This document shows, one piece after another, positions 412 through 64,000 of a stretch of 64,000 bases of DNA. Under the pieces are notes generated by a model. The model searched no databases. It worked only from the letters and a program-made list of their open reading frames with translations, and was not told the DNA's origin. Each line of letters opens with the position of its first letter. The first letter of the stretch is position 1. The stretch is from Basidiobolus meristosporus CBS 931.73 (lineage: Eukaryota; Fungi; Basidiobolomycota): the NCBI GenBank assembly GCA_002104905.1, contig MCFE01000116.1, positions 100,132-164,131 on the forward strand. The letters are read 5' to 3'. The position numbers were made by a program, and so were the translations under genes.

Positions 412-642
412 ATGAGACTCTTTGCTGTACTCACTACTTGTATCGTTGCCACAATGACAGCTAATGGCTACCCCGTAAATCAGGTGACTGATGGAGTAGC
501 GATGGAAAAGAGAGATCTGCACGACTTTTGTGGAGGCTGGTTCTGCGGCCATGTGAAGCGTGATCACACAGTCCATGACAGTCAGACTACTACATCTTCT
601 CTGAGCTCACATCAGCCTAACACCCTAATGACAGCTGAATAA
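412..642 (+). CDS. Peptide precursor copy 1 (class A), core DLHDFCGGWFCGHV
   Basis: Hydrophobic signal MRLFAVLTTCIVATMTANG, pro-segment, KR-core-KR; CACATAAA box at 316. Confidence 0.9.
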   Translation: MRLFAVLTTCIVATMTANGYPVNQVTDGVAMEKRDLHDFCGGWFCGHVKRDHTVHDSQTTTSSLSSHQPNTLMTAE

Positions 643-5817: not shown

Positions 5818-6048
5818 ATGAGACTCATTGCTGTACTCACTACTTGTATCGTTGCCACAATGAGAGCTAATGGCTACCCCGTAAATCAGGTGACTGGTGG
5901 AGTAGCCATGGAAAAGAGAGATCTGCACGACTTTTGTGGAGGCTGGTTCTGAGGTCATGTGAAACGTGATCACACAGTCCATGACAGTCAGACTACTACA
6001 CCTTCTCTGAGCTCACATCAGCCTAACACCTTCATGACAGCTCAATAA
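5818..6048 (+). pseudogene. Precursor copy 7 (class A) with nonsense codon at the second core Cys
   Basis: TTC TGA GGT at 5947-5955 (Cys to stop at 5950-5952); otherwise colinear with copy 1. Absent from the ORF track. Confidence 0.85.
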
Positions 6049-11613: not shown

Positions 11614-11937
11614 ATGAAATTCGCCAGCGTACTTGCTATTCTTGCCGCTGTTTCAGCAACAATTGACTGCTACCCATTGATCCTGGAGACTAGCTTTGAT
11701 ATTTTGAGATATTTCTACAGAACAATCATGAAATTCGCCAGCGTACTTGTAATTCTTGCCGCTGCTTCAGCAACAATTGACTGCTACCCATTGATCCTGG
11801 AGACTAGCGATTCAGCAATGGACAAGAGAGATCTGCATGACTTCTGTGGAGGCTGGTTCTGTGGTCATGTTAAACGGGAGGAAGCTCTCGAAGCCAATGG
11901 AGCCATAACTTCAGCCTCAGGAATGCCAAATGCCTGA
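11614..11937 (+). CDS. Peptide precursor copy 13 (class B with tandemly duplicated signal region)
   Basis: Two in-frame MKFASVL starts at 11614 and 11728 (114 bp apart), followed by a single core. Confidence 0.85.
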   Translation: MKFASVLAILAAVSATIDCYPLILETSFDILRYFYRTIMKFASVLVILAAASATIDCYPLILETSDSAMDKRDLHDFCGGWFCGHVKREEALEANGAITSASGMPNA

Positions 11938-15519: not shown

Positions 15520-16207
15520 TGAGCATAGACTGCACCAATGACGAGCTGATATCCAAGCCCAAATTCAGGTTTAAGTAATCCTACCACCCAAACTCTCCAA
15601 TTTTGTTGCTACTGATGCACGATCAGCTAAGCGTAACCATTCAGCCTCTGCATGGATTTTTGATTTCCTGATAATATACTACAAAATAAACAATATATCC
15701 CCACATTCCAAATATCCGTTTTGTTGCTTAACCAGTAGGGTAAAAACCCCTCGTTTGCGAGTCCTTGCCATTTTGTTCCATTTCGACATGATGTCCTAAA
15801 TGAACATCTATTCGGGCATGTTCAAACTCCACCAACATCCTCCTGTAAATTCTCTTGCAAGCTTGATATGTACATATCGGCACTGGTCAAGGCCTCCAAT
15901 ATCCACAGGAGTTCTCTGCTTACTTATGAAATTCTGAGGTCTGTGCTGCCGACAATTTCAGGAATCGGAATATGATGTGACGATGATTCACAATCTCAAT
16001 CCAATAAATAAGACTGTTTCGGGACATCATTTTAGTTTACTTTCCATCCGTTGTATCTTGTGCGACCAACAATTCTGGGAATCAGTAATTGCCACTCTGG
16101 GATTCCTAGAACTCCCAAGAAATGTACATAAATCGCTCCCCAACGAACCATCATTCCTCAGGCTACAGCCTTGCTATCGAATACCAAACTCTTCCCCGAC
16201 CGGAATA

Positions 16208-16438
16208 ATGAGACTCCTTTCTGTACTCGCTGTTTGTATCATTTCTGCAATGACAGCTAACGGCTATCCTGTGGGTCAGCTAGCCAATGATGTAACCAAG
16301 GAGAAGAGAGATCTGCATGACTTTTGTGGAGGTTGGTTCTGTGGCCATGTGAAGCGTGATCTCTCTGTCCATGACAGCCAGACTACTACATCTTCTCTGA
16401 CCTCACAGCAGCCTAAAACCTTCATGACCGCTCTATAA
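16208..16438 (+). CDS. Peptide precursor copy 18 (class A')
   Basis: ATG at 16208; signal + KR-core-KR. Confidence 0.9.
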   Translation: MRLLSVLAVCIISAMTANGYPVGQLANDVTKEKRDLHDFCGGWFCGHVKRDLSVHDSQTTTSSLTSQQPKTFMTAL

Positions 16439-17314: not shown

Positions 17315-18002
17315 TTAGCATAGACTACACTAATGACGAGCCGATATCCAAGCCCAAATTCAGGTTTAAGTAATCCTACCACCCAAACTCTCCAATTTTG
17401 TTGCTACTGATGCACGATCAGCTAAGCGTAACCATCCAGCCTCTGCATGGATTTTTGATTTCCTGATAATATACTACAAAATAAACAATATATCCCCACA
17501 TTCCAAATATCCGTTTTGTTGCTTAACCAGTAGGGTAAAAACCCCTCGTTTGCGAGTCCTTGCCATTTTGTTCCATTCCGACATGATGTCCTAAATGAAC
17601 ATCTATTCGGGCATGTTCAAACTCCACCAACATCCTCCTGTATATTCTCTTGCAAGCTTGATATCTACATATCGGCACTGATCAAGGCCTCCAGTATCCA
17701 CAGGAGTTCTCTGCTTACTTATGAAATTGTGAGGTCTGTGCTGCCGACAATTTCAGGAATCGGAAAATGATGTGACGATGATTCACAATCTCAATCCAAT
17801 AAATAAGACTGTTTCGGGACATCATTTTAGTTTACTTTCCATCCGTTGTATCTTGTGCGACCAACAATTCTGGGAATCAGTAATTGCCACTCTGGGATTC
17901 CTAGAACTCCCAAGAAATGTACATAAATCGCTCCCCAACGAACCATCATTCCTCAGGCTACAGCCTTGCTATCGAATACCAAACTCTTCCCCGACCGGAA
18001 TA

Positions 18003-18233
18003 ATGAGACTCCTTTCTGTACTCGCTGTTTGTATCATTTCTGCAATGACAGCTAACGGCTATCCTGTGGGTCAGCTAGCCAATGATGTAACCAAGGAGAA
18101 GAGAGATCTGCATGACTTTTGTGGAGGTTGGTTCTGTGGCCATGTGAAGCGTGATCTCTCTGTTCATGACAGCCAGACTACTACATCTTCTCTGAGCTCA
18201 CAGCAGCCTAATACCTTCATGACAGTTCAATAA
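18003..18233 (+). CDS. Peptide precursor copy 20 (class A')
   Basis: ATG at 18003; signal + KR-core-KR. Confidence 0.9.
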   Translation: MRLLSVLAVCIISAMTANGYPVGQLANDVTKEKRDLHDFCGGWFCGHVKRDLSVHDSQTTTSSLSSQQPNTFMTVQ

Positions 18234-19110: not shown

Positions 19111-19798
19111 TTAGCATAGACTACACTAATGACGAGCTGATATCCAAGCCCAAATTCAGGTTCAAGTAATCCTACCACCCAGACTCTCCAATTTTGTTGC
19201 TACTGATGCACGATCAGCTAAGCGTAACCATCCAGCCTCTGCATGGATTTTTGATTTCCTGATAATATACTACAAAATAAACAATATATCCCCACATTCC
19301 AAATATCCGTTTTGTTGCTTAACCAGTAGGGTAAAAACCCCTCGTTTGCGAGTCCTTGCCATTTTGTTCCATTCCGACATGATGTCCTAAATGAACATCT
19401 ATTCGGGCATGTTCAAACTCCACCAACATCCTCCTGTAAATTCTGTTGCAAGCTTGATATCTACATATCGGCACTGATCAAGACCTCCAATATCCACAGG
19501 AGTTCTCTGCTTACTTATGAAACTCTGAGGTCTGTGCTGCCGAGAATTTCAGGAATCGGAATATGATGTGAAGATGATTCACAATCTCAATCCAATAAAC
19601 AAGACTGTTTCAGGACATCATTTCAGTTTACTTTCCGTCCGTGGTATCTTGTGCGACCAACAATTCTGGGAATCAGTAATTGCCACTCTGGGATTCCTAG
19701 AACTCCCAAGAAATGTACATAAATCGCTCCCCAACGAACCATCATTCCTCAGGCTACAGCCTTGCTATCGAATACCAAACTCTTCCCCGACCGGAATA

Positions 19799-20029
19799 AT
19801 GAGACTCCTTTCTGTACTCGCTGTTTGTATCATTTCTGCAATGACAGCTAACGGCTATCCTGTGGGTCAGCTAGCCAATGATGTAACCAAGGAGAAGAGA
19901 GATCTGCACGACTTTTGTCGAGGTTGGTTCTGTGGACATGTGAAGCGTGATCTCTCTGTCCATGACAGCCAGACTACTACATCTTCTCTGAGCTCACAGC
20001 AGCCTAATACCTTCATGAGAGTTCAATAA
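19799..20029 (+). CDS. Peptide precursor copy 22 (class A', variant core DLHDFCRGWFCGHV)
   Basis: GGA to CGA at 19919-19921. Confidence 0.85.
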   Translation: MRLLSVLAVCIISAMTANGYPVGQLANDVTKEKRDLHDFCRGWFCGHVKRDLSVHDSQTTTSSLSSQQPNTFMRVQ

Positions 20030-20896: not shown

Positions 20897-21601
20897 ATGC
20901 CAAATGCCTGATGAGCATAGACTGCACTAATGACGAGCTGATATCCAAGCCCAAATTCAGGTTCAAGTAATCCTACCACCCAAACTCTCCAATTTTGTTG
21001 CTACTGATGCACGATCAGCTAAGCGTAACCATTCAGCCTCTGCATGGATTTTTGATCTCCTGATAATATACTACAAAATAAATAATATATCTCCACATTC
21101 CAAATATCCGTTTTGTTGCTTAACCAGTAGGGTAAAAACCCCTCGTTTGCGAGTCCTTGCCATTTTGTTCCATTCCGACATGATGTCCTAAATGAACATC
21201 TATTCGGACATGTTCAAACTCCACCAACATCCTCCTGTAAATTCTCTTGCAAGCTTGATATCTACATATCGGCACTGATCAAGGCCTCCAATATCCACAG
21301 GAGTTCTCCGCTCACTTATGCAAATTCTGAGGTCTGTGCTGCCGAGAATTTCAGGAATCGGAAATATGATGTGACGATGATTCACAATCTCAATCCAATA
21401 AACAAGACTGTTTCAGGACATCATTTCAGTTTACTTTCCGTCCGTGGTATCTTGTGCGACCAACAATTCTGGGAATCAGTAATTGCCACTCTGGGATTCC
21501 TAGAACTCCCAAGAAATGTACATAAATCGCTCCCCAACGAACCATCATTCCTCAGGCTACAGCCTTGCTATCGAATACCAAACTCTTCCCCGACCGGAAT
21601 A

Positions 21602-21817
21602 ATGAGACTCCTTTCTGTACTCGCTGTTTGCATCATTTCTGTAATGACAGCTAACGGCTATCCTGTGGGTCAGCTAGCCAATGATGTAACCAAGGAGAAG
21701 AGAGATATGCATGACTTTTGTGGAGGTTGGTTCTGTGGCCATGTGAAACGAGAAGATGACCAGGAGTCAAGTAAAGACAGACTTCAGACCTCAATCTTGG
21801 ATATGGCAAATATCTAA
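21602..21817 (+). CDS. Peptide precursor copy 24 (A' front, different tail; variant core DMHDFCGGWFCGHV)
   Basis: ATG codon at 21707 replaces Leu; tail EDDQESSKDRLQTSILDMANI. Confidence 0.88.
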   Translation: MRLLSVLAVCIISVMTANGYPVGQLANDVTKEKRDMHDFCGGWFCGHVKREDDQESSKDRLQTSILDMANI

Positions 21818-22822: not shown

Positions 22823-23041
22823 ATGAAACTGATCAATATTATTACAATTCTGGCTACTCTCACCATGATTACAGCTGGCCTTCCACTGGCCCAACAGAGC
22901 CAGGATTCGGCGGGAGACAAGAGAGATCTTCATGATTTCTGTGGAGGCTGGTTCTGCGGCCATGTAAAGCGTGCGAACATCAACAAAATCGACTCACTAA
23001 CTCTGGACTTGATTGACCCAGTTGAGCTACCTTGGGTCTGA
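22823..23041 (+). CDS. Peptide precursor copy 25 (divergent class C)
   Basis: MKLINIITILATLTMITAG-LPLAQQSQDSAGD-KR-identical core-KR; unique flanks; TATATAAA at 22766. Confidence 0.9.
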   Translation: MKLINIITILATLTMITAGLPLAQQSQDSAGDKRDLHDFCGGWFCGHVKRANINKIDSLTLDLIDPVELPWV

Positions 23042-24499: not shown

Positions 24500-25078
24500 A
24501 TGACTCAATACCTGACTGCCATCCCAGTGACCAGAGAGAACTTCGCTCCTTACGGAGATGTGGTCTGCGCTCATGACGGGCCTTTCATCAGCGCTAACCA
24601 GGGTACTGCCCAACGCTACAACCACGTTGCCACCTGCACCAACAACCGGGAAACCGAGAAGTCCGATGTCCCCAAGGCGAACCCTAACTTGTGCGTGTTC
24701 CGATGCAAGCCAGCAACCCAGATTCCTTTCCCCATCAAGCTTCTTGAGCGTCACCCCTACTCCTCCCAATGCTTCGTCCCCATGGCTACCGAGCGCCCAT
24801 CCAAGGGGTACCTGGTCATCGTCGCGCTGAACGGAAAGGACGACAAGCCCGACCTCTCCACCATGAAAGCCTTTACCTTCGCACGCAACCAAGGCGTAAA
24901 CTATGGAGCCGGAATCTGGCATCACCCAATGGTCGCCCTTGAGGAGCTCACCGACTTCGGCTGCATTGTGTGGGAAAACAAGGTCCCCCATCACGATTGC
25001 AATATTGTCGAAATCGGAGGTGACTACAAAACCCACATTCCTGGCTACCGCGCCGCCTCCCCCTCCACCAAGCTCTAA
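24500..25078 (+). CDS. DAL3: Ureidoglycolate lyase (allantoin catabolism)
   Basis: FAPYGDV, ANQGTA, LLERHPYSSQCFVPM and GVNYGAGIWHHPM motifs of the AllA/DAL3 family. Confidence 0.93.
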   Translation: MTQYLTAIPVTRENFAPYGDVVCAHDGPFISANQGTAQRYNHVATCTNNRETEKSDVPKANPNLCVFRCKPATQIPFPIKLLERHPYSSQCFVPMATERPSKGYLVIVALNGKDDKPDLSTMKAFTFARNQGVNYGAGIWHHPMVALEELTDFGCIVWENKVPHHDCNIVEIGGDYKTHIPGYRAASPSTKL

Positions 25079-25436
25079 ACCCATTCACGTTACATAGCAT
25101 CTGCAGATCATGTGTGAGCATAAACATCATAAATAAATAAACAAAAGCATTTCACCAACAATTTCCTCCATCTATTCTCATACCACCAAAGCAATCAGTG
25201 ACCACTGCTCTTGATATTATCACATGGCAACTTCATGCTCCCAGTCAGACATCAGGAAATGTCGCATGATTCACGTGACCAGATGATCCGTACCGATCCC
25301 TCTGATCGCGGCCGATCAGAAAAGATCAATTAAAAAAACAAAAAAATCGGGGGAAGATCTCATTTAATAGATGGTTCTTCGGAGATGGAGCAACCCCTTT
25401 CGCGTTTGCCAAAGTTTACGTGCAGACTAATCCAAG

Positions 25437-26359
25437 ATGGCTGTTGGAAAGAACAAGTAAAGAGCGAATTTCACATCCCCGCCAGATTCAGTTTCGATTC
25501 TAACCAGTTACTTCGGATGTAATTAGGCGCCTCTCTAAAGGAAAGAAGGGTTTGAAGAAGAAGATGTAAGTTATCCATCAAGCCTCAGCAGATCCATCCA
25601 TCGATCCCCACCCAGGCATGATGCTAACCGTTTGAATTGGTATCTAGCGTTGATCCCTTCACCCGTAAGGACTGGTATGACATCAAGGCACCATCCCTTT
25701 TCGAAGTCCGCAACGTTGGTAAGACCCTTGTCAACCGTACCCAAGGTTTGAAGAACGCCACCGACTACTTGAAGGGTCGTGTTCTCGAGGTCTCCCTCGC
25801 CGATTTGAACAAAGACGAGGACCAATCTTTCCGTAAGATTCGCCTCAGAGTTGATGAAGTTCAAGGCAAGAACTGCCTCACCAACTTCCACGGCATGACC
25901 TTCACCTCCGATAAATTGAGATCCCTCGTCAAGAAGTGGCAATCTCTCATCGAGGCCCACGTCGATGTCAAGACCACCGATGGCTATCTTCTTCGTCTCT
26001 TCTCTATCGGTTTCACCCGCAGAAGACCCAACCAACTCAAGAAGACCACCTACGCCCAATCCGCTCAAATCCGCCAAATCCGCAAGAAGATGTTCGAGAT
26101 CATGACCCGCGAGGCCTCCACCTGCGACCTCAAGTCCTTGGTCCAAAAATTCATCCCTGAGGTGATCGGCCGTGAGATCGAGAAGGCCTGCCAAGGTATC
26201 TACCCTCTCCAAAACGTCTACCTCCACAAAGTCAAGATCCTCAAGGCCCCCAAATTCGACGTTGGCAAATTGATGGAGCTTCACGGAGATGCCTCTGAAG
26301 ATTCCGGAGCCAAGATCGCCAAGGAATTCAAGGAACCCCAAGTCTTCACTGACATCTAA
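25437..26359 (+). CDS. RPS1: 40S ribosomal protein eS1 (S3a), two short 5' introns
   Basis: Spliced [36 protein letters not shown]...; GT-AG introns after AACAA and AAGAT. Confidence 0.98.
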
Positions 26360-27079
26360 ATGTACTCACACTACCATTTAATAAACATCATACAAAGTGC
26401 GATACAAACCAGACCTCAACCGCTCTGCCGGGATCTGTTGTACACAGCAATCGCAGAGGACAGCCCAAGCCACAGTACAGCAGCCCTATCATACGCCTCG
26501 AGACCCTTGAGGACAACAATTAAATTAGGCACTAGACAGGTCGGCGTGAGCAAGTACATGCATAAAGTGGATATTAATTGCATTAGTCATTGAGTAGAAC
26601 CCAAGCACAAGGGGCAGGTGATTGGTGAGCGAGGTTAGTCTGTCACACATTATCAGTACGGTACCAAACTTCCCATACAATCAACACCGTACACTCCGTG
26701 CAAGAGTATCCCTTAAACGTACGAGTTTAGGAACATTGATTAATGATTCTAATGATAATATATGGATTTCGTGCCAGTAATTTATTCTATTTATGCTTTC
26801 CTGTTCAATCTATCCTGGTCCACGGTCACTCTCTCCTTTTCCCTCCTTTCATTATAGCATAAATTTTGCCAGTTCAACTTGGTCGTCCCTCCATTTTTAT
26901 CCCCGCTTGTTGTTTGCCCTTTTCCACACCGCCTTCGCTTTACTGTGGCTCCCGTTTATCCTCCCCACCCCCACCTGCAGCAGCCTTCCTGCTAAAAGTC
27001 TTTTGAACCGTCCCACTCCCCTCCCCCGTCGAAATAGCAACGTCCGTCCCACCCCCACATATCCAGAATAAGAACCAGC

Positions 27080-28285
27080 ATGAGCGACATATCGGAAAGA
27101 ATCGCCGTTGCCAGAAGAGATGCAGAACAGCTCAAAGAGAAGATTCGGCAGAAAAAAGATAGCCTGGCCGATGCGACACGTAAGAGCCAGCGTTCGAGTG
27201 CCCGGGGTTGCTTTTAATGTTTCCTTCCCTCCTGTAGTGAAGAACATCGCTGCCGAGTTGGAACCGCTCCCCAGAATAGTCATGAAGGTGCGCCGTTCCC
27301 TTAAGGGGCATCTCGCCAAGATTTATGCCATGCAGTGGGCCAACGACGAGCGTCACCTCGTTTCGGCCTCTCAGGATGGAAAGTTGATCGTGTGGGATGC
27401 CTACACAACAAATAAGATCCATGCTATCCCATTGCGCTCTTCGTGGGTGATGACCTGCGCATATGCCCCTTCTGGGAACTTCGTTGCATGCGGTGGATTG
27501 GATAATATCTGTTCGATTTATAACCTGAAGACCAAGGAGGGCTCTGTCAAGGTGGCCAGAGAGCTGAGTGCACACACGGGATACCTATCTTGCTGCCGAT
27601 TTCTCAGTGATCGCCAAATCCTAACCAGCTCGGGAGACATGACCTGTATGCTTTGGGACATTGACGCCGGAGTGAAATTGATGGATTTCGCGGACCACAC
27701 CGGGGATGTGATGAGGTATGGAGTTGTCTGGTTGTGAATCCGCGCCAAGTTACTAACCTTTCCCATCAGCCTGTCCCTTGCCCCGGAGAAAAACATCTTC
27801 GTGTCGGGCGCTTGTGACGCAACCGCCAAAGTGTGGGACATTCGAACCGGAAAATGCGTACAAACGTTCACAGGCCACGAGTCGGACATCAACGCCGTTC
27901 AGTTTTTCCCTAACGGGGATGCTTTCGGCACCGGCTCGGACGACACAACATGTAGGCTGTTTGATTTACGGGCAGACCGAGAGCTGAGCCAATACGCACA
28001 CGATAACATCTTATGCGGGATTACCTCGGTGGCGTTCTCGGTGTCTGGTAGACTTCTGTTCGCCGGCTATGACGATTTCAACTGCAACGTTTGGGACACA
28101 ATGAGGGGCGATAGAGTCGGTGTGCTGGCTGCACACGAGAACAGAGTAAGTTGCTTGGGCGTGTCTGCGGATGGTATGGCTCTATGTACCGGCAGTTGGG
28201 ACAGCTTACTAAAGGTAATCCTCCTCAGTCTACTCTACCCTGAGCCCCAACTAACAATCCGACCTTTTACTAGATCTGGGCTTAG
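27080..28285 (+). CDS. gpb1: Heterotrimeric G-protein beta subunit (WD40), intron-containing
   Basis: N-terminal coiled coil, [38 protein letters not shown] and a final exon IWA-stop; GT-AG introns. Confidence 0.97.
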
Positions 28286-29332
28286 ATAGATGTGCTCTTG
28301 TTTATCCCCCACATATATTCCACTATTCACTATTTATTGTTCAGTTTCCATCCCGTTTTACTTGTAGCTAAAGAGTCTCCCCCACCCATATTTTCTTGAT
28401 ACATTCCTCGCTGTCACCCTTACCCTTACCCTCACCCTCACCCTCACCCGCGCCTTCCCATACACATGTATTCTTCCGTTGATTTCGTATATTCCGTTTG
28501 TCTGTCAAGAGCCTGACTTCCCCTTTTCTATGGCTAGCATCACTACACTCAATTCTACCCCACCTTTGCTTTTGACTACATCATTACCCTTGGCACCTAC
28601 CTCGATATCAATGATCTGATTTTATGGAAAGCCTTTTAATCCACCTGTTCGAAATGTTGCTGTGTTTTACTGCTTGCGTAGACCTCTGGCAGTTGTCAGC
28701 CGGGAAAGTGGCATGTGTGACGAAAGGGCAGAACGGCTCATAGAATTAGGGTGGTCTGTCGCGTGTGGGCCACACACAACCCTTGCCAGGAATGGAGGCG
28801 CAACGTTCAAGATGGTTGCCAAAGCTGTTACCATTCCTAGACTGGAATGCAAAATCATTAGCCATTGGCTTACCCGTGGATCATTTGTCAATCAAATGTA
28901 CAGTCTGAATTGCTCTATGGGCGGATCAGGAAAGACCACCTCTCCACCAATGGAAGGGGATGCCTTCCTGGTCTGCTGATCACCATCCAGAGTACTGCGA
29001 TCATTCGTTACGTTTGACTGTATTGATCTGGAATCTCGTTTCACAGCGCGGATTGAGCCGGTTATTTTAGCATTCTTTCCTCCAACCCTTCGCCATCATA
29101 TAAATACTCAATCCCGACGGCGAGGGCTTAATTTGAACCAAGGCCGAAAATTAAGGTACGTCTCGATGGTATTTGGCTCGGCATCCGATAGATTGCGATG
29201 GATTGTCAGAGACTAGCTTGCTCCATCTGTTTCACCGCATTGCATTTGGGTTGATCACTCACTTCAATTTATATCCACTTATTTGCCACCCTCCACTCTG
29301 CAGTACATCTACGCAAACACCAACCATCCTAC

Positions 29333-40531: not shown

Positions 40532-41144
40532 CTGAATGATTGGCGATCGACAATAACTGGCCAACAACATCCCATCCGCACCGTACAGTTCCAGTTCTTT
40601 CTCGGTAAAATCAGCCAATCAGGGTGATCCCGAATGCAACCATCCTAAAGTGGACAATCATCATTCTGGATTGAGGTGAAGAATCTGTTCTGGAATCGAT
40701 TCCCCATTCAAATACCAACATATCATATAGACGATTTTCCACTCCATTGTAATTTTGACTCACTAATCACTCAGCAGCGTCTAATAGTTGCTTTGTTTTT
40801 GATAAATGCTAATTTGCTTCGCTTTTTCCGCGATGAATATGCTGCAAGTTTATATACATTCCCCGGCTTTGAGGGTTGTATTGGAAATACACATGTATTA
40901 TTCATTTTTGACTGCTGGCCACATGGTATGATTGAGTGCCAGTTGAAGTAAATATGGCACGAGTAGAAGTTAAAAATAGCATGAGGCCAACGCTTAAAAT
41001 CCACTAGGCATCGTAGCGGTGGATGATGCGTTGAGGTAAACATTGCACGGGTAGAGGTTAAAAATAGGGAAAACTCGTGAAGCTTGGCTAAACACGAAGC
41101 GTATCTATATATAAATACTAAAATCCCACTCTTTGTCTACAACA

Positions 41145-44100
41145 ATGGCGTCCATTCAGCTAATTTTAACGTTGTTCCTGGGGATTGCAGCAGCCCAGGA
41201 AGTCCGCACTAACCATCAGAACGATTTGGAAACAGGATTCACGGAAATATTGATACAAGAAAATACCCCAGGGGGCTCCTGCAGTAGTGGTAACGAGATA
41301 TGCTATGATGGTACCGCGTTTCTTCTGTGCGAGTTCGGTACCTGGTCTTCGGATGTATGCTCCCAAGGTTATTCGTGCACCAATCTAGATATCCCAGGCA
41401 GGATCAAATGTACTTCACAAACAACCTTTGTAAGTGATATTACTATCACTAGTTCTGGCATTGTATACACAACGGTGACTTTCCCCACTGTCACCTATTC
41501 CGGCCCGGTTGACCCGCCGGCCACTGAAGCTTCGAGTTACTACACTCCTGGTGGGCCGTGCAACAATTACGACATTGTGTGCTATCCAGAAAACACCTTT
41601 CTGTATTGTACCTCAGGAACCTGGGAGCAACTGCAGTGCCCATTTCCAGGGCAAGTGTGTAGCTACAATAGCTTTTTCTCCTTTCAGGGAACTTGTACAT
41701 ATTCAGTTGGATATTCAGCCACCGTTGTTACCTATCCTTTTGGTCCCAATCCTCCGGGATCAGAGGTAACTTCACTAGTCTCTCTTGGTGGTCCGTGTAA
41801 TCCAAATGATCAAATCTGTTACGGAACTGAGGGAAGTTTCCTCGTATGCGGAACACAAGGTTGGGCTCCGGCCACATGCGGGTCCGATGTATCATGTGGT
41901 TACTATTTTGGACTGACGAACCTCGTAAGTTGTGAATACAACACAGTGGTGACTTCCTCCGTCGAAAGCTTTGAATCATCGGGATATACTCCAAGTATTC
42001 CGAATGAAGAATCCAGCACAACCCAACCAACCCCACAGGCCTCCGAAACTGCAACAAACACCCCCACTCCTACTGCCAGGACAACACCATCTACATCTAT
42101 ATCCTCAACACAGCTACCGACAACAAGTCCCTCCACTTCAGGAGCAACACCTGAGAGCTCCAGCATAACTCAATCCTCAACAGAGTCCACAACAACCAAC
42201 ACCGCTGCGACAAGCTCGAATGCCACCACATCAACACCAAACTCCACCACCACACAGCAAACATCCCAGTCTGCGTCAGGGTCTACTGTAGTAAGTAGCT
42301 CTGCTTCACCGACGGAAACTTCGAGTACAACCATATCAACACCAACGTCCAGTACGACACTATCGACTACTCAATCCACAGAAACTACAACCGCAACGAG
42401 TCCCAACACAACACAGTCGACTACCCAAGCTCAGCCCACATCGGAGTCTACCGCAGCAAGCAGCTCTGCCTCGCTGACTGTAACCTCGAGTACAACCACA
42501 TCAACACCAACATTCAGTACTACACTGTCGACTACGCCGTCATCAACTCAACCCACAGCAACTACAACTGCTCCTGCGGAGACAACTACGCCATCAACAC
42601 CGAACTCCACCACAGCACAGCCAACAACTCAGCCCACATCAGAGTCTACTTCAGCGACAACTCCTGTAACTGGATCTACTGAGAGCCCCAACACAACACA
42701 GTCGACTACCCAAACTCAGCCCACATCGGAGTCTACTGCAGTAAGCAGTTCCACCTCACCAACAGAAACCTCGAGTATAACCACATCAACACCAACATCC
42801 AGTTCTACACTATCGACTACTCCGTCGCCAACTGAACCCACAGAAACTACAACTGCGACGTCGGAGACATCTACACCCTCATCAGCACCAACCTCGACCA
42901 CAACACAGCCAACAACTCAGCCCACATCAGAGTCTACTACAGCGACAACTCCTGTAACTGGATCTACTGAGAGCCCCAACACAACACAGTCGACTACCCA
43001 AATTCAGCCCACATCGGAGTCTACTGCAGTAAGCAGTTCCGCCTCACCGACGGAAACCTCGAGTATAACCACATCATCACCAACATCCAGTACGACGCAG
43101 TCGACTACTCCATCGTCAACTGAACCCACGGAAACTACAACTGCGACGTCGGAGACATCTACACCCTCATCAGCACCAACCTCGACCACAACACAACCAA
43201 CAACTCAGCCCACATCAGAGTCTACTTCAGCGACAACGCCTGTAACTGGGTCTACTGAGAGCCCCAACACAACACAGTCGACTACCCAATCCTCTACGGA
43301 ATCCACAACCCCAGGTACATCCACATCAGAACAAACAGCTTCGTCTGCTTTACCATCGGAAACTTCGAGTACAGCCACATCAACACCAACACCCAGTACG
43401 ACGCAATCGACTACTCCATCGTCAACTGAACCCACCACAACTACAACTGCGACGTCTGAAATGACTACGCCCTCATCAACACCGAACTCCACCACAACAC
43501 AGCCAACAACTCAGCCCACATCAGAGTCTACTTCAGCAACAACACCTATAACCAGGTCTACTGAGAGCCTTAACACAACACAATCTACTACCCAATCCTC
43601 TACGGAATCCACAACCCCAGGTACATCCACATCAGAACAAACAGCTTCGTCTGCTTTACCATCGGAAACCTCGAGTACAGCCACATCAACACCAACACCC
43701 AGTACGACGCAATCGACTACTCCGTCGTCAACTGAACCCACAGCAACTACAACTGCAACGTCGGAAACGACTACGCCATCAACACCGAACTCCAACACAA
43801 CACAGCCAACAACTCAGCCCACATCAGAGTCTAGTTCAGCAACAACGCCTGTAACTGGGTCTACTGAGAGCCTCAACACAACACAGTCGACAACCCAAAC
43901 TCAGCCTACATCGGAGTCTACCGCAGTAAGCAGTTCCGCCTCACCGACGGAAACCTCGAGTACAACCACATCATCACCAACGTCCAGTACAACGCAGTCG
44001 ACTACTCCATCGTCAACTCAACCCACAGAAACTACAAATGCAACGTCAGTAACAACTACACCCTCATCAACAATAAGCTCCGCCACAACACAACCAACAA

Positions 44101-47087
44101 CTCAGCCCACATCAGAGTCTACTTCAGCGACAACGCCTGTAACTGGGTCTACTGAGAGCCCCAGCACAACAGAGTCGACTACCCAAATTCAGCCCACATC
44201 GGAGTCTACTGCAGTAAGCAGTTCCACCTCACCAACGGAAACCTCGAGTATAACCACATCAACACCAACATCCAGTTCTACACTATCGACTACTCCGTCG
44301 TCAACTGAATCCTCAGCAACTACAACTGCGACGTCGGAGACGACTGCACTCTCATCAACACCAAGCTCCACCACAACACAGCCAACAACTCAGCCCACAT
44401 CAGAGTCTAGTTCAGCAACAACGCCTGTAACTGGGTCTACTGAGAGCCCCAACACAACACAGCCGACTACCCAAATTCAGCCCACATCGGAGTCTACTGC
44501 AGTAAGCAGTTCCGCCTTACCGACGGAAACCTCGAGTACAACCACATCATCACTAACGTCCAGTACGACGCAGTCGACTACTCCGTCGTCAACTGAACCC
44601 ACGCTTACGTCCAGTACAACGCAGTCGACTACTCCATCGTCAACTCAACCCACAGAAACTACAAATGCAACGTCAGTAACAACTACACCCTCATCAACAA
44701 TAAGCTCCACCACAACACAGCCAACAACTCAGCCCACATCAGAGTCTAGTTCAGCAGCAACGCCTGTAACTGGGTCTAATGAGAGTCCCAACACAACCCA
44801 GTCTACTACCCAACCCTCTACGGAATCCACAACCCCAGGTACATCCACATCAGAACAAACAGCTTCGTCTGCTTTACCATCGGAAACTTCGAGTACAGCC
44901 ACATCATCACCAACACCCAGTACTACACTGTCGACTACTCCGTCGTCAACTGAACCTACCGAAACTACAACTGCGACGTCGGAAATGACTACGCCCTCAT
45001 CAACGCCGAACTCCACCACAACACAGCCAACAACTCAGCCCACATCAGAGTCTAGTTCAGCAACAACGCCTGTAACTGGGTCTACTGAGAGCCTCAACAC
45101 AACACAGTCGACAACCCAAACTCAGCCTACATCGGAGTCTACCGCAGTAAGCAGTTCCGCCTCACCGACGGAAACCTCGAGTACAACCACATCATCACCA
45201 ACGTCCAGTACAACGCAGTCGACTACTCCATCGTCAACTCAACCCACAGAAACTACAAATGCAACGTCAGTAACAACTACACCCTCATCAACAATAAGCT
45301 CCGCCACAACACAACCAACAACTCAGCCCATATCAGAGTCTACTTCAGCGACAACTCCTGTAACTGGGTCTACTGAGAGCCCCAGCACAACACAGCCGAC
45401 TACCCAAATTCAGCCCACATCGGAGTCTACTGTAGTAAGCAGTTCCACCTCACCAACAGAAACCTCGAGTATAACCACATCAACACCAACATCCAGTTCT
45501 ACACTATCGACTACTCCGTCGTCAACTGAATCCTCAGCAACTACAACTGCGACGTCGGAGACGACTGCACTCTCATCAACACCAAGCTCCACCACAACAC
45601 AGCCAACAACTCAGCCCACATCAGAGTCTAGTTCAGCAACAACGCCTGTAACTGGGTCTACTGAGAGCCCCAACACAACACAGCCGACTACCCAAATTCA
45701 GCCCACATCGGAGTCTACTGCAGTAAGCAGTTCCGCCTTACCGACGGAAACCTCGAGTACAACCACATCATCACTAACGTCCAGTACGACGCAGTCGACT
45801 ACTCCGTCGTCAACTGAACCCACGGAAACTACAACTGCGACGTCGGAGACATCTACACCCTCATCAGCACCAACCTCCACCACCACACAACCAACATCTC
45901 AGTCCGCAGTAAGCAACTCCACTTCAGTGTTAACACCAACATCCAGTACGACGCAATCGACTACTCCGTCGTCAACTGAACCCACAGCAACTACAACTGC
46001 GACGTCGGAGACGGTTTCGCCCTCATCAACACCGAACTCCACCACAACACAGCCAACAACTCAGCCCACATCAGAGTCTACTCCCGCGACAACTCCTGTA
46101 TCTGGATCCGCTGAGAGCCCAAGTTCATCACAACTGACTGCTCAATCCTCAACGGAATCTACAACCACAGGTACATCCACATCAGAGCAATCAAGTACTA
46201 CACAATCGACTACTCCACCATCAACCCAACTTACAGCGACTACCAACACAACCCAGTTGACTACCCAAACTCAACCCACAGCAACTACAACTGTGATATC
46301 GGAGACAACTACACCCTCATCAACAATAATCTCAACCACAACACAACCAACAAATCAGCCCACATCAGAGTCTACTTCAGCAACAATACCTGTAACTGGA
46401 TCAGCTGAGAGCCCCAACACAACACAGCCTAATACCCAATCCACAACAGAATCCACAACTACAGGTACAACCAAATCTGAACAAACAACTTCGTCTGTTT
46501 CACCAGCGGAAACCTCGAGCACAGCTACATCAACACCAACATCTAGGACTACACAGTTGGCTAGTTCGCCATCAACTCAAGTTACGGAAACTACTGCTCC
46601 TACTTCGAAGTCTAGTGTTTCCTCATCAGCATCAAAATCCACAACACAATCAACATCCCAGCTCACGACCGAGTCAACTAAAGCAAGTAACTCCACTTCA
46701 GCGACAGCACCTGTATCCGAATCAACTGAGAGTTCTGTCACCTCACAATCCGGTGTTCAATCTTCAGAAGAATCTTCAACAATGCGTACATCAGAATCAA
46801 CAATTTCGTCCGTTTCATCATCGGAAGCCTCAAGTGTAACAACATCAACACCAACCTCCGGTACGATCCAATCAACATCTCAACCCTCATCGGAGTCCAC
46901 TACAATTAGCAGCTCCGCTTCGGTGACAGCACCGGCAACCGAGCCCAGTGAGAGCCAGAAGACAACACAGTCGACCACTCAGCCAACAACTGAGAACCTC
47001 AGCTCTGCAGGTACATCAAGGACGAAAACACTTACTATGTGTTCACGTAAAACTATTACCAAATGCGCCATTTGCACCGACTCTTAA
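41145..47087 (+). CDS. Giant secreted mucin/adhesin-like protein: three CBM19-like modules + about 1700-aa Ser/Thr repeat stalk
   Basis: Uninterrupted 1980-aa ORF, signal peptide, Cys-rich head, about 95-100-aa internal repeats, TATATAAATA upstream. Confidence 0.88.
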   Translation: MASIQLILTLFLGIAAAQEVRTNHQNDLETGFTEILIQENTPGGSCSSGNEICYDGTAFLLCEFGTWSSDVCSQGYSCTNLDIPGRIKCTSQTTFVSDITITSSGIVYTTVTFPTVTYSGPVDPPATEASSYYTPGGPCNNYDIVCYPENTFLYCTSGTWEQLQCPFPGQVCSYNSFFSFQGTCTYSVGYSATVVTYPFGPNPPGSEVTSLVSLGGPCNPNDQICYGTEGSFLVCGTQGWAPATCGSDVSCGYYFGLTNLVSCEYNTVVTSSVESFESSGYTPSIPNEESSTTQPTPQASETATNTPTPTARTTPSTSISSTQLPTTSPSTSGATPESSSITQSSTESTTTNTAATSSNATTSTPNSTTTQQTSQSASGSTVVSSSASPTETSSTTISTPTSSTTLSTTQSTETTTATSPNTTQSTTQAQPTSESTAASSSASLTVTSSTTTSTPTFSTTLSTTPSSTQPTATTTAPAETTTPSTPNSTTAQPTTQPTSESTSATTPVTGSTESPNTTQSTTQTQPTSESTAVSSSTSPTETSSITTSTPTSSSTLSTTPSPTEPTETTTATSETSTPSSAPTSTTTQPTTQPTSESTTATTPVTGSTESPNTTQSTTQIQPTSESTAVSSSASPTETSSITTSSPTSSTTQSTTPSSTEPTETTTATSETSTPSSAPTSTTTQPTTQPTSESTSATTPVTGSTESPNTTQSTTQSSTESTTPGTSTSEQTASSALPSETSSTATSTPTPSTTQSTTPSSTEPTTTTTATSEMTTPSSTPNSTTTQPTTQPTSESTSATTPITRSTESLNTTQSTTQSSTESTTPGTSTSEQTASSALPSETSSTATSTPTPSTTQSTTPSSTEPTATTTATSETTTPSTPNSNTTQPTTQPTSESSSATTPVTGSTESLNTTQSTTQTQPTSESTAVSSSASPTETSSTTTSSPTSSTTQSTTPSSTQPTETTNATSVTTTPSSTISSATTQPTTQPTSESTSATTPVTGSTESPSTTESTTQIQPTSESTAVSSSTSPTETSSITTSTPTSSSTLSTTPSSTESSATTTATSETTALSSTPSSTTTQPTTQPTSESSSATTPVTGSTESPNTTQPTTQIQPTSESTAVSSSALPTETSSTTTSSLTSSTTQSTTPSSTEPTLTSSTTQSTTPSSTQPTETTNATSVTTTPSSTISSTTTQPTTQPTSESSSAATPVTGSNESPNTTQSTTQPSTESTTPGTSTSEQTASSALPSETSSTATSSPTPSTTLSTTPSSTEPTETTTATSEMTTPSSTPNSTTTQPTTQPTSESSSATTPVTGSTESLNTTQSTTQTQPTSESTAVSSSASPTETSSTTTSSPTSSTTQSTTPSSTQPTETTNATSVTTTPSSTISSATTQPTTQPISESTSATTPVTGSTESPSTTQPTTQIQPTSESTVVSSSTSPTETSSITTSTPTSSSTLSTTPSSTESSATTTATSETTALSSTPSSTTTQPTTQPTSESSSATTPVTGSTESPNTTQPTTQIQPTSESTAVSSSALPTETSSTTTSSLTSSTTQSTTPSSTEPTETTTATSETSTPSSAPTSTTTQPTSQSAVSNSTSVLTPTSSTTQSTTPSSTEPTATTTATSETVSPSSTPNSTTTQPTTQPTSESTPATTPVSGSAESPSSSQLTAQSSTESTTTGTSTSEQSSTTQSTTPPSTQLTATTNTTQLTTQTQPTATTTVISETTTPSSTIISTTTQPTNQPTSESTSATIPVTGSAESPNTTQPNTQSTTESTTTGTTKSEQTTSSVSPAETSSTATSTPTSRTTQLASSPSTQVTETTAPTSKSSVSSSASKSTTQSTSQLTTESTKASNSTSATAPVSESTESSVTSQSGVQSSEESSTMRTSESTISSVSSSEASSVTTSTPTSGTIQSTSQPSSESTTISSSASVTAPATEPSESQKTTQSTTQPTTENLSSAGTSRTKTLTMCSRKTITKCAICTDS

Positions 47088-60529: not shown

Positions 60530-62897
60530 AGAGTCACCAACTGGTGAAATCTTTATTTCAGTTGAAACAAAGAAGCCAGCGCTACTGTTGTAGCTTTGAT
60601 ACAAGAGTTTGTAGCTGAAGGGAATTTGTAGGTAAGTTAATGAGAAGTGATGATAGTTCTTCAGTGCTCAAGACTCTTCAGTGGGAAGGGGGGTAGCAAG
60701 AGAGGTAAGAATGACTTGTGAACAACATTAATGAGGGGAATGTGATAAGGATTGATATTCATCATAAAGGGAGTGTGCTGCTGCAGATATTGCTGCCAAA
60801 GGCCTGTCAAGTACTTCAGGTAGGCCAGCTTGGGTTTTTCTGACTGCAGAATATAATGAGCAAACTTCTTGACTTCAGGATCTCCAAGTATAGTTCTCCA
60901 GCAGGAGCCAGGTGTAGTATGGTGTGTTCTCTTCCAGGCCTTAATAAGTGGGTTGTTGCAGTTGTGAAGTCTGAGATATAATCTGGTTCTGAGGTAGAGA
61001 AGTCTGATCTTATAGGCATAAACCCAAAAGCACCAAGAATAGCATGTCTGTAGGGGCATTCAGGCAAATGAGGCACCAAGGAGGTAATGCACCATACTGC
61101 AAACTTGTCAAGCTTAGTGCAGTCTCTAGTAGTAAGAGTGAGAAGTGGTAAGCCAAATTCCAGGACAGGGAAGACAAACTGCTTGAATAGAAGGAGGCAG
61201 CTGGGAGCTGAAGTTGTAGGAGGAGTAACAGCCAGTAGCTTGTGGAGTGCCTGTCTTGCCAGGATAATTCTCTTCTTCAGGTGTGCTCCAGAGTCTAGTC
61301 CAGTAGAAAGGAAAGGAAAGCCAACATATGTAGCAGGAACCTGAGCATGTAGAGTGGAGTTCTCCAAGTTGATGGGAGAGCTCAAAGGTACTGTCTTTGC
61401 AATGGAAAGCAGGAGATTATTCTTCTGCAGATACTGGTGAATGGTCTGGGAGTCTTGTTGCACATTGGAGGAGGATATTCTGATGTCATCAGCAGAGCAA
61501 GCAACCAGGCAGTCAGCTGAGAGTCTTGGGAAATCATTCAGGAAGATGGCAAACAGTATAGGACCAAGCACAGAGCCTTGAACCACTCCATTGGAACTGA
61601 GAACACAGCTGATTGCTCACTTGGGTGAAGAATTCTTGCTTGTGGATCCAGAAACAGAGACCTGACAAGGAGGGTGAGAGATGTACAGGAGAAGCATTGC
61701 AACTTAGACCAAAGCCAATTTCTGTCAACTGAATTAAAGGCCTCAGTAATTTCAAATAGAACAGACGGATATTTGCACTAGAGAGAGTGATCTTGGCAAA
61801 GTATGACTGCATATTCCAAGGAGAGGCCAGGAACAAAGCCAAACTGTGCAGGGTGAAACTTGAGGGAGTCAGAGTAAAGCTACTGAGCAAGCAGAAGCTC
61901 AAACACCTTTCTGCAGGTGGGCAGCAGAGATATTGGCCTGTAGGAGTTAGGATCCAGGTGCTTTCCTTTATCCTTGTACAGTGGCAGAACATTTGCAAAG
62001 GACCATTCCTCAGGAGTAGAAACCTGGCCTGAGCATTGCTGAAACAGTGGAAGCAGAAGTGCAGACATGGCCTTGGTACTAGTCTTCAGAAGCTCATAGG
62101 AGATTGTGTCCACACCTGGGGCAGTAGAGTTGGGAAGACTCTTGAGCACATTATGGATTCTCCCCTGATCAAGTGCAAGTGGGATGGGCAGAGTCTTGAA
62201 GTCAGGATGAAAGCCAGGAGTTGAGTACTGCTTTGTAGAGAAGAAGATGTTAGCCAGCTGTTCTGTTGAAGGTAACTTCCTGGAAGAGGGCCTCATTGCC
62301 CTGTAGAGTCTTGATACTGTTCTTGTTACAGAGTTGGAAGATTGCAGAGGCAAAGAATTCATAATTTGATCCCAGAGCTGAGCATGCAGAGTGTGGTGAA
62401 TTGCGTTGGAGTGGTGTATGGCTGTCAGGAGGAGTTTCTCTGTTTTTGGGTTAGGGAAATTCAGGTAGCTTTGTTGCAGGGCTGAAACATTGGATTCCCA
62501 TTTTCTTGAGGTAACAGCAGTAGTCTTGCATGGCAGTGAGTGGGAGGCAGAGACCAGAATCAGATGCTTCACAAAGACCCAGGCATAGTTGTGATCATCT
62601 GACAGAGAAAGTAGCAAACTGGCAAGCTTCAAGTAGTTCCCAAAGTCTTTCTTCTGATTCTTGGTAGCTTTGTGGGTGAGCACAGTAAGTTTTAGCAGCT
62701 TCTTCTTCACAACTGGTTGCATAGAAAGGGACCAGGCTGGGTGGTCAGAGGCCCCCAAGGATCCTAGCTCAGCTCCAGAGAATTGCATAACTTCATTCAC
62801 AAAGTAGAGGGCAGCAGCAGAAGGGCAGATCTAGTCAACACATCTTTTCTCAGATTCAGCACCTAGTGCTAGCAGATGGCTTTCTCTCAGGAAGTTC
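60530..62897 (-). mobile_element. 5'-truncated, inactivated non-LTR (LINE) retrotransposon ORF2: APE C-terminal stub + reverse transcriptase
   Basis: SDH motif, APGVDTISYELLK, YRPISLL, QFGF, GVVQGSVLGPILF and ADD; in-frame TAG stops and frameshifts; bounded by TTAGGG stubs. Confidence 0.88.
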
Positions 62898-63794: not shown

Positions 63795-64000
63795 AGGGTT
63801 AGGGTTAGGGTTAGGGTTAGGGTTAGGGTTAGGGTTAGGGTTAGGGTTAGGGTTAGGGTTAGGGTTAGGGTTAGGGTTAGGGTTAGGGTTAGGGTTAGGG
63901 TTAGGGTTAGGGTTAGGGTTAGGGTTAGGGTTAGGGTTAGGGTTAGGGTTAGGGTTAGGGTTAGGGTTAGGGTTAGGGTTAGGGTTAGGGTTAGGGTTAG
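63795..64000 (+). repeat. Telomere (TTAGGG)n
   Basis: About 33 perfect units running to the end of the window, G-rich strand 5'-3' toward the end. Confidence 0.99.

Follow-up and report, generated by a model that had tools for sequence, protein, structure and literature searches.

Toward the end of a contig of the gut fungus Basidiobolus meristosporus CBS 931.73, a gene for a small peptide is repeated many times over, which raises the question of what this peptide is and whether copper binding is the function for which it has been kept. The window, meaning the whole stretch of DNA that was analyzed, spans 64,000 nucleotides (MCFE01000116.1:100132-164131). Its first copy of the precursor gene is a type A unit encoding 76 amino acids (412-642, + strand), delimited from the list of open reading frames (ORFs) and their translations. 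A 32-residue leader (412-507, +), signal-like at its start as judged by eye, is followed by an N-terminal Lys-Arg site of the Kex2 type (AAG AGA; 508-513, +), the 14 codons of the core peptide DLHDFCGGWFCGHV (514-555, +), a C-terminal Lys-Arg site (AAG CGT; 556-561, +) and an acidic, Ser/Thr-rich tail (562-639, +) that ends in a stop codon (640-642). To the eye all precursor types begin alike, with Arg or Lys at position 2 and then 14-16 hydrophobic or small residues, and a Pfam scan of the precursors gave no match, MF_alpha included. The core combines an X-X-His N-terminus with a Cys6-x4-Cys11 pair and His13, and has a calculated charge of -2.1 at pH 7 and a pI of 5.05. Its calculated monoisotopic mass is 1589.62 Da with the disulfide closed and 1591.63 Da when reduced. 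The initial annotation had described Asp-Leu-His directly after Lys-Arg, two cysteines with four residues between them, a second histidine close to the C-terminus and an acidic net charge, and had held that this is not a classic cationic antimicrobial peptide. All of this stands, with the Lys-Arg site and the core at exactly these positions and with a core that is anionic.

Twenty-five copies of the gene, about 0.9 kb apart and all on the + strand, make up the part of the array that lies within the window (412-23041). Units of two types, A (MRL...) and B (MKF...), alternate along the array and have strongly different leaders and tails, and the last copy (22823-23041, +) has a leader and tail unrelated to either, with an identical KR-core-KR block. 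Each gene holds a single core, the array occupies one strand, and amplification is at the level of the gene. When units are aligned, identity peaks at the core and, in type B, also at a TATA-containing promoter stretch; AATAAA signals lie 3' of the ORFs of these predicted genes. An unbiased scan, which accepted any stretch with at least 8/14 identities to the core and forced no motif, counted at least 53 cores across the window, the 15.8 kb upstream of it and a second contig (MCFE01001045.1). Database gene models proved unreliable in this region: P0001, P0002 and P0004 are spliced so that they skip within-unit sequence or join adjacent units, and the multi-core look of P0001 and P0003 reflects fusion of neighboring units or partial duplication, P0003 being a type B unit with a partial internal duplication (11614-11937, +; its 107-aa ORF carries two leaders but a single core). 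In one type A subtype a stretch of 107 codons ahead of the usual ATG is free of stops (MIHNLNPINK...), as seen at 15983-16438, 17778-18233, 19574-20029 and 21377-21817 (all +); this upstream frame is probably non-coding and recurs through repetition of the unit.

The first part of the array lies outside the window, beginning 11.5 kb upstream, and its last unit stops at 23041, about 41 kb short of telomere repeats. These repeats, a TTAGGG tract at 63799-64000, close both the window and the contig, which makes the peptide array subtelomeric. An ORF with an RVT_1 reverse-transcriptase domain is found near this tract (60816-61586, -). A 1984-codon ORF (41133-47087, +) shows a strong strand skew and encodes a product with 32% Thr, 24% Ser and 10% Pro whose start is signal-like; Pfam gave no match, and the product has the look of a mucin-like protein, either secreted or part of the wall.

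Purifying selection holds the peptide and both dibasic sites. Among the 24 full-length copies in the window, 11 of the 18 codons of the KR-core-KR block carry synonymous variants, and the only changes that alter the product of the core block are three singletons (L2M, G7R and a stop at C11). The Nei-Gojobori method gave a dS of 0.69 and a dN of 0.004 for this block, a dN/dS of 0.006 compared to 0.76 in the leader, and a Fisher test of synonymous versus non-synonymous states gave p = 8e-5. The C-terminal Lys-Arg codons vary synonymously (AAG/AAA; CGT/CGG/CGA) at constant residues. Type A, type B and the terminal copy encode the same core despite their unrelated leaders and tails; for the core of the last copy (22823-23041) against types A and B together, pS is 0.66 and pN 0.003. 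Gene conversion was considered as the source of this identity and rejected: synonymous divergence in the core equals that elsewhere, so that selection, not homogenization, explains why the cores are the same.

Constraint is spread over the whole peptide. In the unbiased scan it was about equal at every core residue, with no position standing out, and the missense singletons comprised L2M, H3D, D4A, F5L, C6F, G7R/A, W9S/R, F10L, C11S, G12D and V14I. A tally that forced D-x-H had suggested that the putative ligand residues are never substituted (p = 0.025), a result we discarded given that copies with H3D, C6F and C11S exist. Two variants named in the initial annotation are indeed present, a DMH copy (21602-21817, +; core DMHDFCGGWFCGHV at 21704-21745) and a loop-deleted copy with an intact ORF and both Cys lost (2218-2418, +; core DLHDFYDHV at 2320-2346). 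Further copies carry Gly7->Arg (19799-20029, +; core DLHDFCRGWFCGHV) or a stop in place of Cys11 (5818-5952, +; probably a pseudogene). The accompanying claim that the DLH start is retained among the copies is borne out by the DMH and loop-deleted copies but not throughout, since the unbiased scan turned up, 6.7 kb upstream of the window, an intact copy with His3->Asp (DLD; core DLDDFCGGWFCGHV); His3 is thus not invariant. Moreover, the loop-deleted core differs from the normal one by a 15-nt in-frame deletion plus TGT>TAT and GGC>GAC, so it keeps DLH by descent and does not constitute independent evidence.

Outside B. meristosporus, Basidiobolus ranarum was the only species with relatives in an exhaustive HMM search that covered 1.84 billion representative proteins. 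The core in this species is DLHDLCG(G/R)WFCGHT, with many synonymous differences among cores, and differs between the species at positions 5 (F/L), 8 (G/R) and 14 (V/T), leaving D1-L2-H3-D4 unchanged. B. ranarum genes usually hold two cores each and are clustered on both strands of short contigs (L004:1-7692 and L005:1-4178). In-gene repeats in B. ranarum and gene-level amplification in B. meristosporus are therefore two different routes to high dosage. Beside the array, Pfam identified a ureidoglycolate lyase (24500-25078, +), ribosomal protein S3Ae (25637-26359, +) and a G-protein beta subunit (27108-27737 and 27801-28289, +), and this flank (24500-28289) has the same order and orientation as beside a B. 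ranarum peptide gene (stretch L003). The peptide locus is orthologous in the two species, and the last copy of the array (22823-23041) corresponds in position to the B. ranarum gene P0011. The G-protein beta gene, 4 kb from the array, was entertained as a hint of a pheromone pathway and dropped because it belongs to this conserved housekeeping block.

Metagenomes gave no match to a protein pattern or a degenerate DNA pattern for DFCGGWFCGH, and a PDB sequence search and the ESM Atlas yielded nothing usable on the peptide family. A word-based search of protein records gave matches to hypothetical proteins of B. meristosporus CBS 931.73 and to nothing else. The core string is absent from the text supplements of Umemura 2020 (PMC7329392). 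Two JGI metagenome proteins labeled as molybdate-transport protein (P0010/P0012) represent a 330-aa protein with repeats of GGRLGFCGPPGAPCGKVKR, which, Cys pair included, resembles instead a multi-peptide precursor of the fungal Kex2 type. The family is a genus-restricted, real, Kex2-type ring peptide.

Both Basidiobolus species also encode a sister family in which FWNMRYYCGGWVC[AM]H[APT] follows KR or RR: P0008 (L006:6794-7423) and P0013 in B. ranarum and P0014 in B. meristosporus. Its cores resemble FWNMRYYCGGWVCAH, with the consensus FWNMRYYCGGWVCxH, and its precursors end in, or repeat, the core; degenerate upstream repeats also keep the CX4C spacing. The two families have in common a C-G-G-W-x-C-x-H module, the CX4C spacing, secreted-type precursors cut at KR or RR, and their presence in both species. 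The sister family differs in its low-copy genes with one to three cores, in a peptide that is near neutral or cationic, and in a seven-residue arm that is aromatic and basic and lacks His3, so that no ATCUN site is present. The link between the families is a short motif (P0008, E = 1.2e-5) and could reflect convergence. If they are homologous, the ring with its downstream His would be the older module and the ATCUN arm a lineage-specific addition. No core of either family departs from the CX4C spacing, and the one intact loop-deleted copy lost both cysteines; the Cys pair behaves as a unit. In keeping with the two-cysteine ring proposed in the initial annotation, the CX4C pair is the most conserved feature of the family, and a disulfide between its members is predicted.

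The flanks of the core suggest Kex2-type processing. Lys-Arg precedes 52/53 cores in B. meristosporus and 20/21 in B. ranarum, and dibasic KR stands on both flanks in 52 of the 53; the C-terminal site in B. ranarum is KR, KKR, RKR or RR. The residue before the N-terminal Lys-Arg is D, E or N; yeast alpha-factor likewise has Asp there, in LDKR. No Gly directly precedes the C-terminal Lys-Arg, and an amidation signal is thus absent. We propose that the precursor enters the ER by way of a signal peptide and that a Cys6-Cys11 disulfide would there close a six-residue ring. A Kex2-type protease might then cut after both Lys-Arg sites and a Kex1-type carboxypeptidase remove the C-terminal Lys and Arg, which would release DLHDFCGGWFCGHV with a free Asp-Leu-His N-terminus. 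The joint scheme of ER entry, Cys6-Cys11 disulfide formation, Kex2-type cleavage, Kex1-type trimming and secretion of the 14-mer appears quite probable. The precursors share a short pro-region, a small KR-bracketed core and the lack of tailoring genes nearby with the Kex2-processed repeat proteins (KEPs; PMC6339444, PMC7329392), and their signal-like start may correspond to the signal peptide of KEPs. Several peptide copies per protein, a defining trait of KEPs, are present in B. ranarum with its two cores per gene but not in B. meristosporus.

The initial annotation also proposed that the N-terminus is an ATCUN site for copper or nickel, and it does fit the sequence rule for this motif, with DLHD kept in B. 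ranarum. Given cleavage after the Lys-Arg at 508-513, the peptide at 514-555 has His at position 3. Residue 2, which must not be Pro if two backbone amides are to be deprotonated, is Leu, with Met in two of the copies. His3 is present in 51/53 B. meristosporus cores, the exceptions being the DLD copy and a leaderless relic, and in 20/21 B. ranarum cores. Asp1 cannot cyclize to pyroglutamate, and since no X-Ala/X-Pro dipeptide follows Lys-Arg, Ste13-type trimming is not expected. Binding of Cu(II)/Ni(II) by the core would be chemically expected if its N-terminus is free; for X-X-His peptides the log K of Cu(II) binding at pH 7.4 is 12.3-15, and a band near 525 nm marks the square-planar 4N complex (PMC8640992). 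Serum albumin (DAHK), hepcidin-25 (DTHFPIC...) and neurokinin B likewise have Asp1 and His3 (PMC9687585, PMC7232333, PMC7701195), and natural ATCUN peptides are released by dibasic cleavage, as is predicted for the core. In hepcidin a Cys also comes soon after the motif, but there are eight Cys compared to the two of the core.

Whether copper binding is what selection sees is a different matter. His makes up 2.8% of residues in five housekeeping ORFs of the window, and 43 Kex2-type precursors have been reported for CBS 931.73, the highest count among 1461 fungi (PMC7329392); chance alone would thus give about one X-X-His N-terminus. All copies are paralogues from one ancestor and amount to a single evolutionary observation. 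If three changes are placed among 14 positions, positions 1-3 are all spared with a probability of 0.45, and retention of DLH between the species, while compatible with a constrained ATCUN arm, carries no weight as evidence for it. The Mac1-type element TTTGCKCR has 5 matches in the window versus 7.7 expected, none of them inside the array, and the Ace1/Cuf1-type pattern HTHNNGCTGD is not enriched (71 matches versus 61 +/- 8.7 expected). A sequence fitting the loose Ace1/Cuf1-type pattern, CTTGCGCTGA (CTTGCGCTGG in two units), lies just 3' of the type B TATA box at 1245-1254 and at the same place in 11 further type B units; it recurs because the type B unit is repeated. Pfam found no copper- or metal-related gene among the neighbors, which are housekeeping genes. 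The copper-specific role considered in the initial annotation finds no specific support: His3 is conserved no more strongly than other residues and is replaced by Asp in one intact copy. Nothing singles out copper as the selected function.

What might the peptide do? The comparative data lean slightly toward specific recognition of the ring module: the C-G-G-W-x-C-x-H element is common to the sister family and is on that account the likely recognition element. We tentatively favor, at a confidence a little short of probable, a ligand or effector that is recognized via its ring module and for which copper binding is a modulating property. Six-residue rings closed by two Cys, with aromatic residues inside, characterize the CX4C hormones oxytocin/vasopressin, urotensin II and octreotide. 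The core, with its predicted disulfide closed, would have this ring geometry and its aromatics (here Trp-Phe) in common with them but no sequence relationship, and its ring content G-G-W-F is not known to match any pharmacophore. The fungus itself may carry the recognizing partner as a receptor, or the target may belong to a competitor or a host. The ATCUN-type arm would bind Cu(II)/Ni(II) tightly with a free N-terminus, and this binding may modulate activity, as described for two processed signaling peptides that bind copper: yeast alpha-factor, which Cu(II) is said to activate (cited in PMC8640992), and neurokinin B (PMC9687585).

This ring-recognition reading has several points to contend with. 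Some alpha-type pheromones have a conserved Cys pair with Gly and aromatic residues, as in RFCHLPGQGCSK, and mating-factor-type precursors are without neighboring tailoring enzymes (Umemura 2020, PMC7329392). However, the peptide differs from ascomycete alpha-factor in lacking Ste13 X-Ala/X-Pro dipeptides, a W-C...C-W or GQP consensus and an MF_alpha match, and B. meristosporus belongs to a lineage outside Dikarya. STE2 is reported as an innovation of the Ascomycota (PMC9202105), so a classical alpha-factor receptor is not expected in Basidiobolus. In addition, more than 50 genes far exceed the dosage of known pheromones and better suit a bulk chelator or antagonist; D1, L2, H3 and D4 are unchanged where positions 5, 8 and 14 differ, which indicates that the arm is constrained as well; and the motif linking the ring to the sister family, being short, may have converged.

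The alternative that comes closest is that the array yields a bulk ribosomal extracellular chelator of Cu(II)/Ni(II), with metal handling as its main function. Such a product could serve to scavenge copper or buffer its level in the gut, to provision secreted copper enzymes or to detoxify, the ring providing stability or a handle for re-uptake. His3, a non-Pro residue 2 and the lack of a Ste13-type dipeptide in 51/53 and 20/21 cores speak for it, as does the affinity of ATCUN sites quoted above. A very high gene dosage also suits a product that acts stoichiometrically. An analogue is the tandem array of yeast CUP1, expanded for copper tolerance, which likewise represents gene-level amplification of a small Cys-containing product (PMC10081759). 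The likeness is by analogy only, and CUP1 differs in being an intracellular metallothionein that holds Cu(I) via thiolates. Yet an ATCUN site requires just a free amine and His3, whereas constraint covers all 14 residues; His3 is Asp in one intact copy and missing from the sister family; and copper-related neighbors and Mac1-type elements are absent from the array, with Ace1-type motifs at chance. We regard this chelator as unlikely.

It is also conceivable, though we consider it rather doubtful, that the peptide is a ribosomal extracellular Cu/Ni carrier encoded by more than 50 genes, with an ATCUN arm and a disulfide ring, the peptide counterpart of bacterial chalkophores. Such a carrier could capture metal in the vertebrate gut or feed secreted copper enzymes, with the ring used for recognition and re-uptake. 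Still more remote is the idea that the DLHDF/DMHDF arm mimics the copper-binding N-terminus of host neurokinin B. The first five residues of neurokinin B (DMHDF) are those of the DMH variant, and the main form shares four. A five-residue match has a chance of about 3e-7 per peptide pair, a figure for a match found post hoc among many known peptides. The core ends in G-H-V before KR, without the FXGLM-NH2 message domain of the tachykinins or an amidation signal, so that the likeness is to be read as a post-hoc coincidence and a lead only.

Alternatively, the peptide might antagonize gut bacteria, other fungi or host cells, with a Cu-ATCUN center generating reactive oxygen species (ROS) at a target recognized by the ring. 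ATCUN antimicrobials such as hepcidin-25 act partly via Cu-dependent ROS (PMC7232333), and the record count of Kex2-type precursors in this strain (PMC7329392) would accord with a role of this kind. The peptide is, however, short and anionic (-2), unlike most membrane-active peptides, and strict conservation instead of diversification is unusual for an arms-race molecule; we judge antagonism to be improbable. More improbable again is a precursor of a further-modified RiPP, whose final molecule would lack the free Asp-Leu-His N-terminus or a simple disulfide. The leader-core-follower plan with Kex2 sites does resemble fungal dikaritin precursors (PMC7329392). However, in neither species did a Pfam scan of ORFs beside the array (26 neighboring ORFs of the window and the gene tables of L001-L006, a scan in which small exons could be missed) find DUF3328/UstYa, tyrosinase, P450 or methyltransferase genes, and Tyr, which dikaritins typically cross-link, is missing from the core. 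Finally, a silent or selfishly amplified repeat with unexpressed reading frames, to which several copies with stops or deletions might point, is highly improbable given a dN/dS of 0.006 with saturated synonymous sites, conservation in two species with unrelated flanks, and a conserved TATA-containing promoter stretch.

Our literature search found no paper on the DLHDFCGGWFCGHV peptide or on any Kex2-released ATCUN peptide in fungi, and no ribosomal peptide with a defined role described for Zoopagomycota. What is new here are the B. ranarum orthologues with their synteny, the sister ring-peptide family, the His3->Asp copy, and the finding that conservation is not ATCUN-specific. The locus unites extreme gene dosage and near-absolute purifying selection with a simple predicted product that is open to peptide synthesis, an unusual combination, and the natural His3->Asp copy offers a built-in control for metal binding. 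If copper binding matters, the peptide would represent a new kind of metal carrier in a fungus that is both a gut symbiont and an occasional pathogen. If copper binding is irrelevant, it would still be a candidate for the first peptide signal or antagonist of this lineage.
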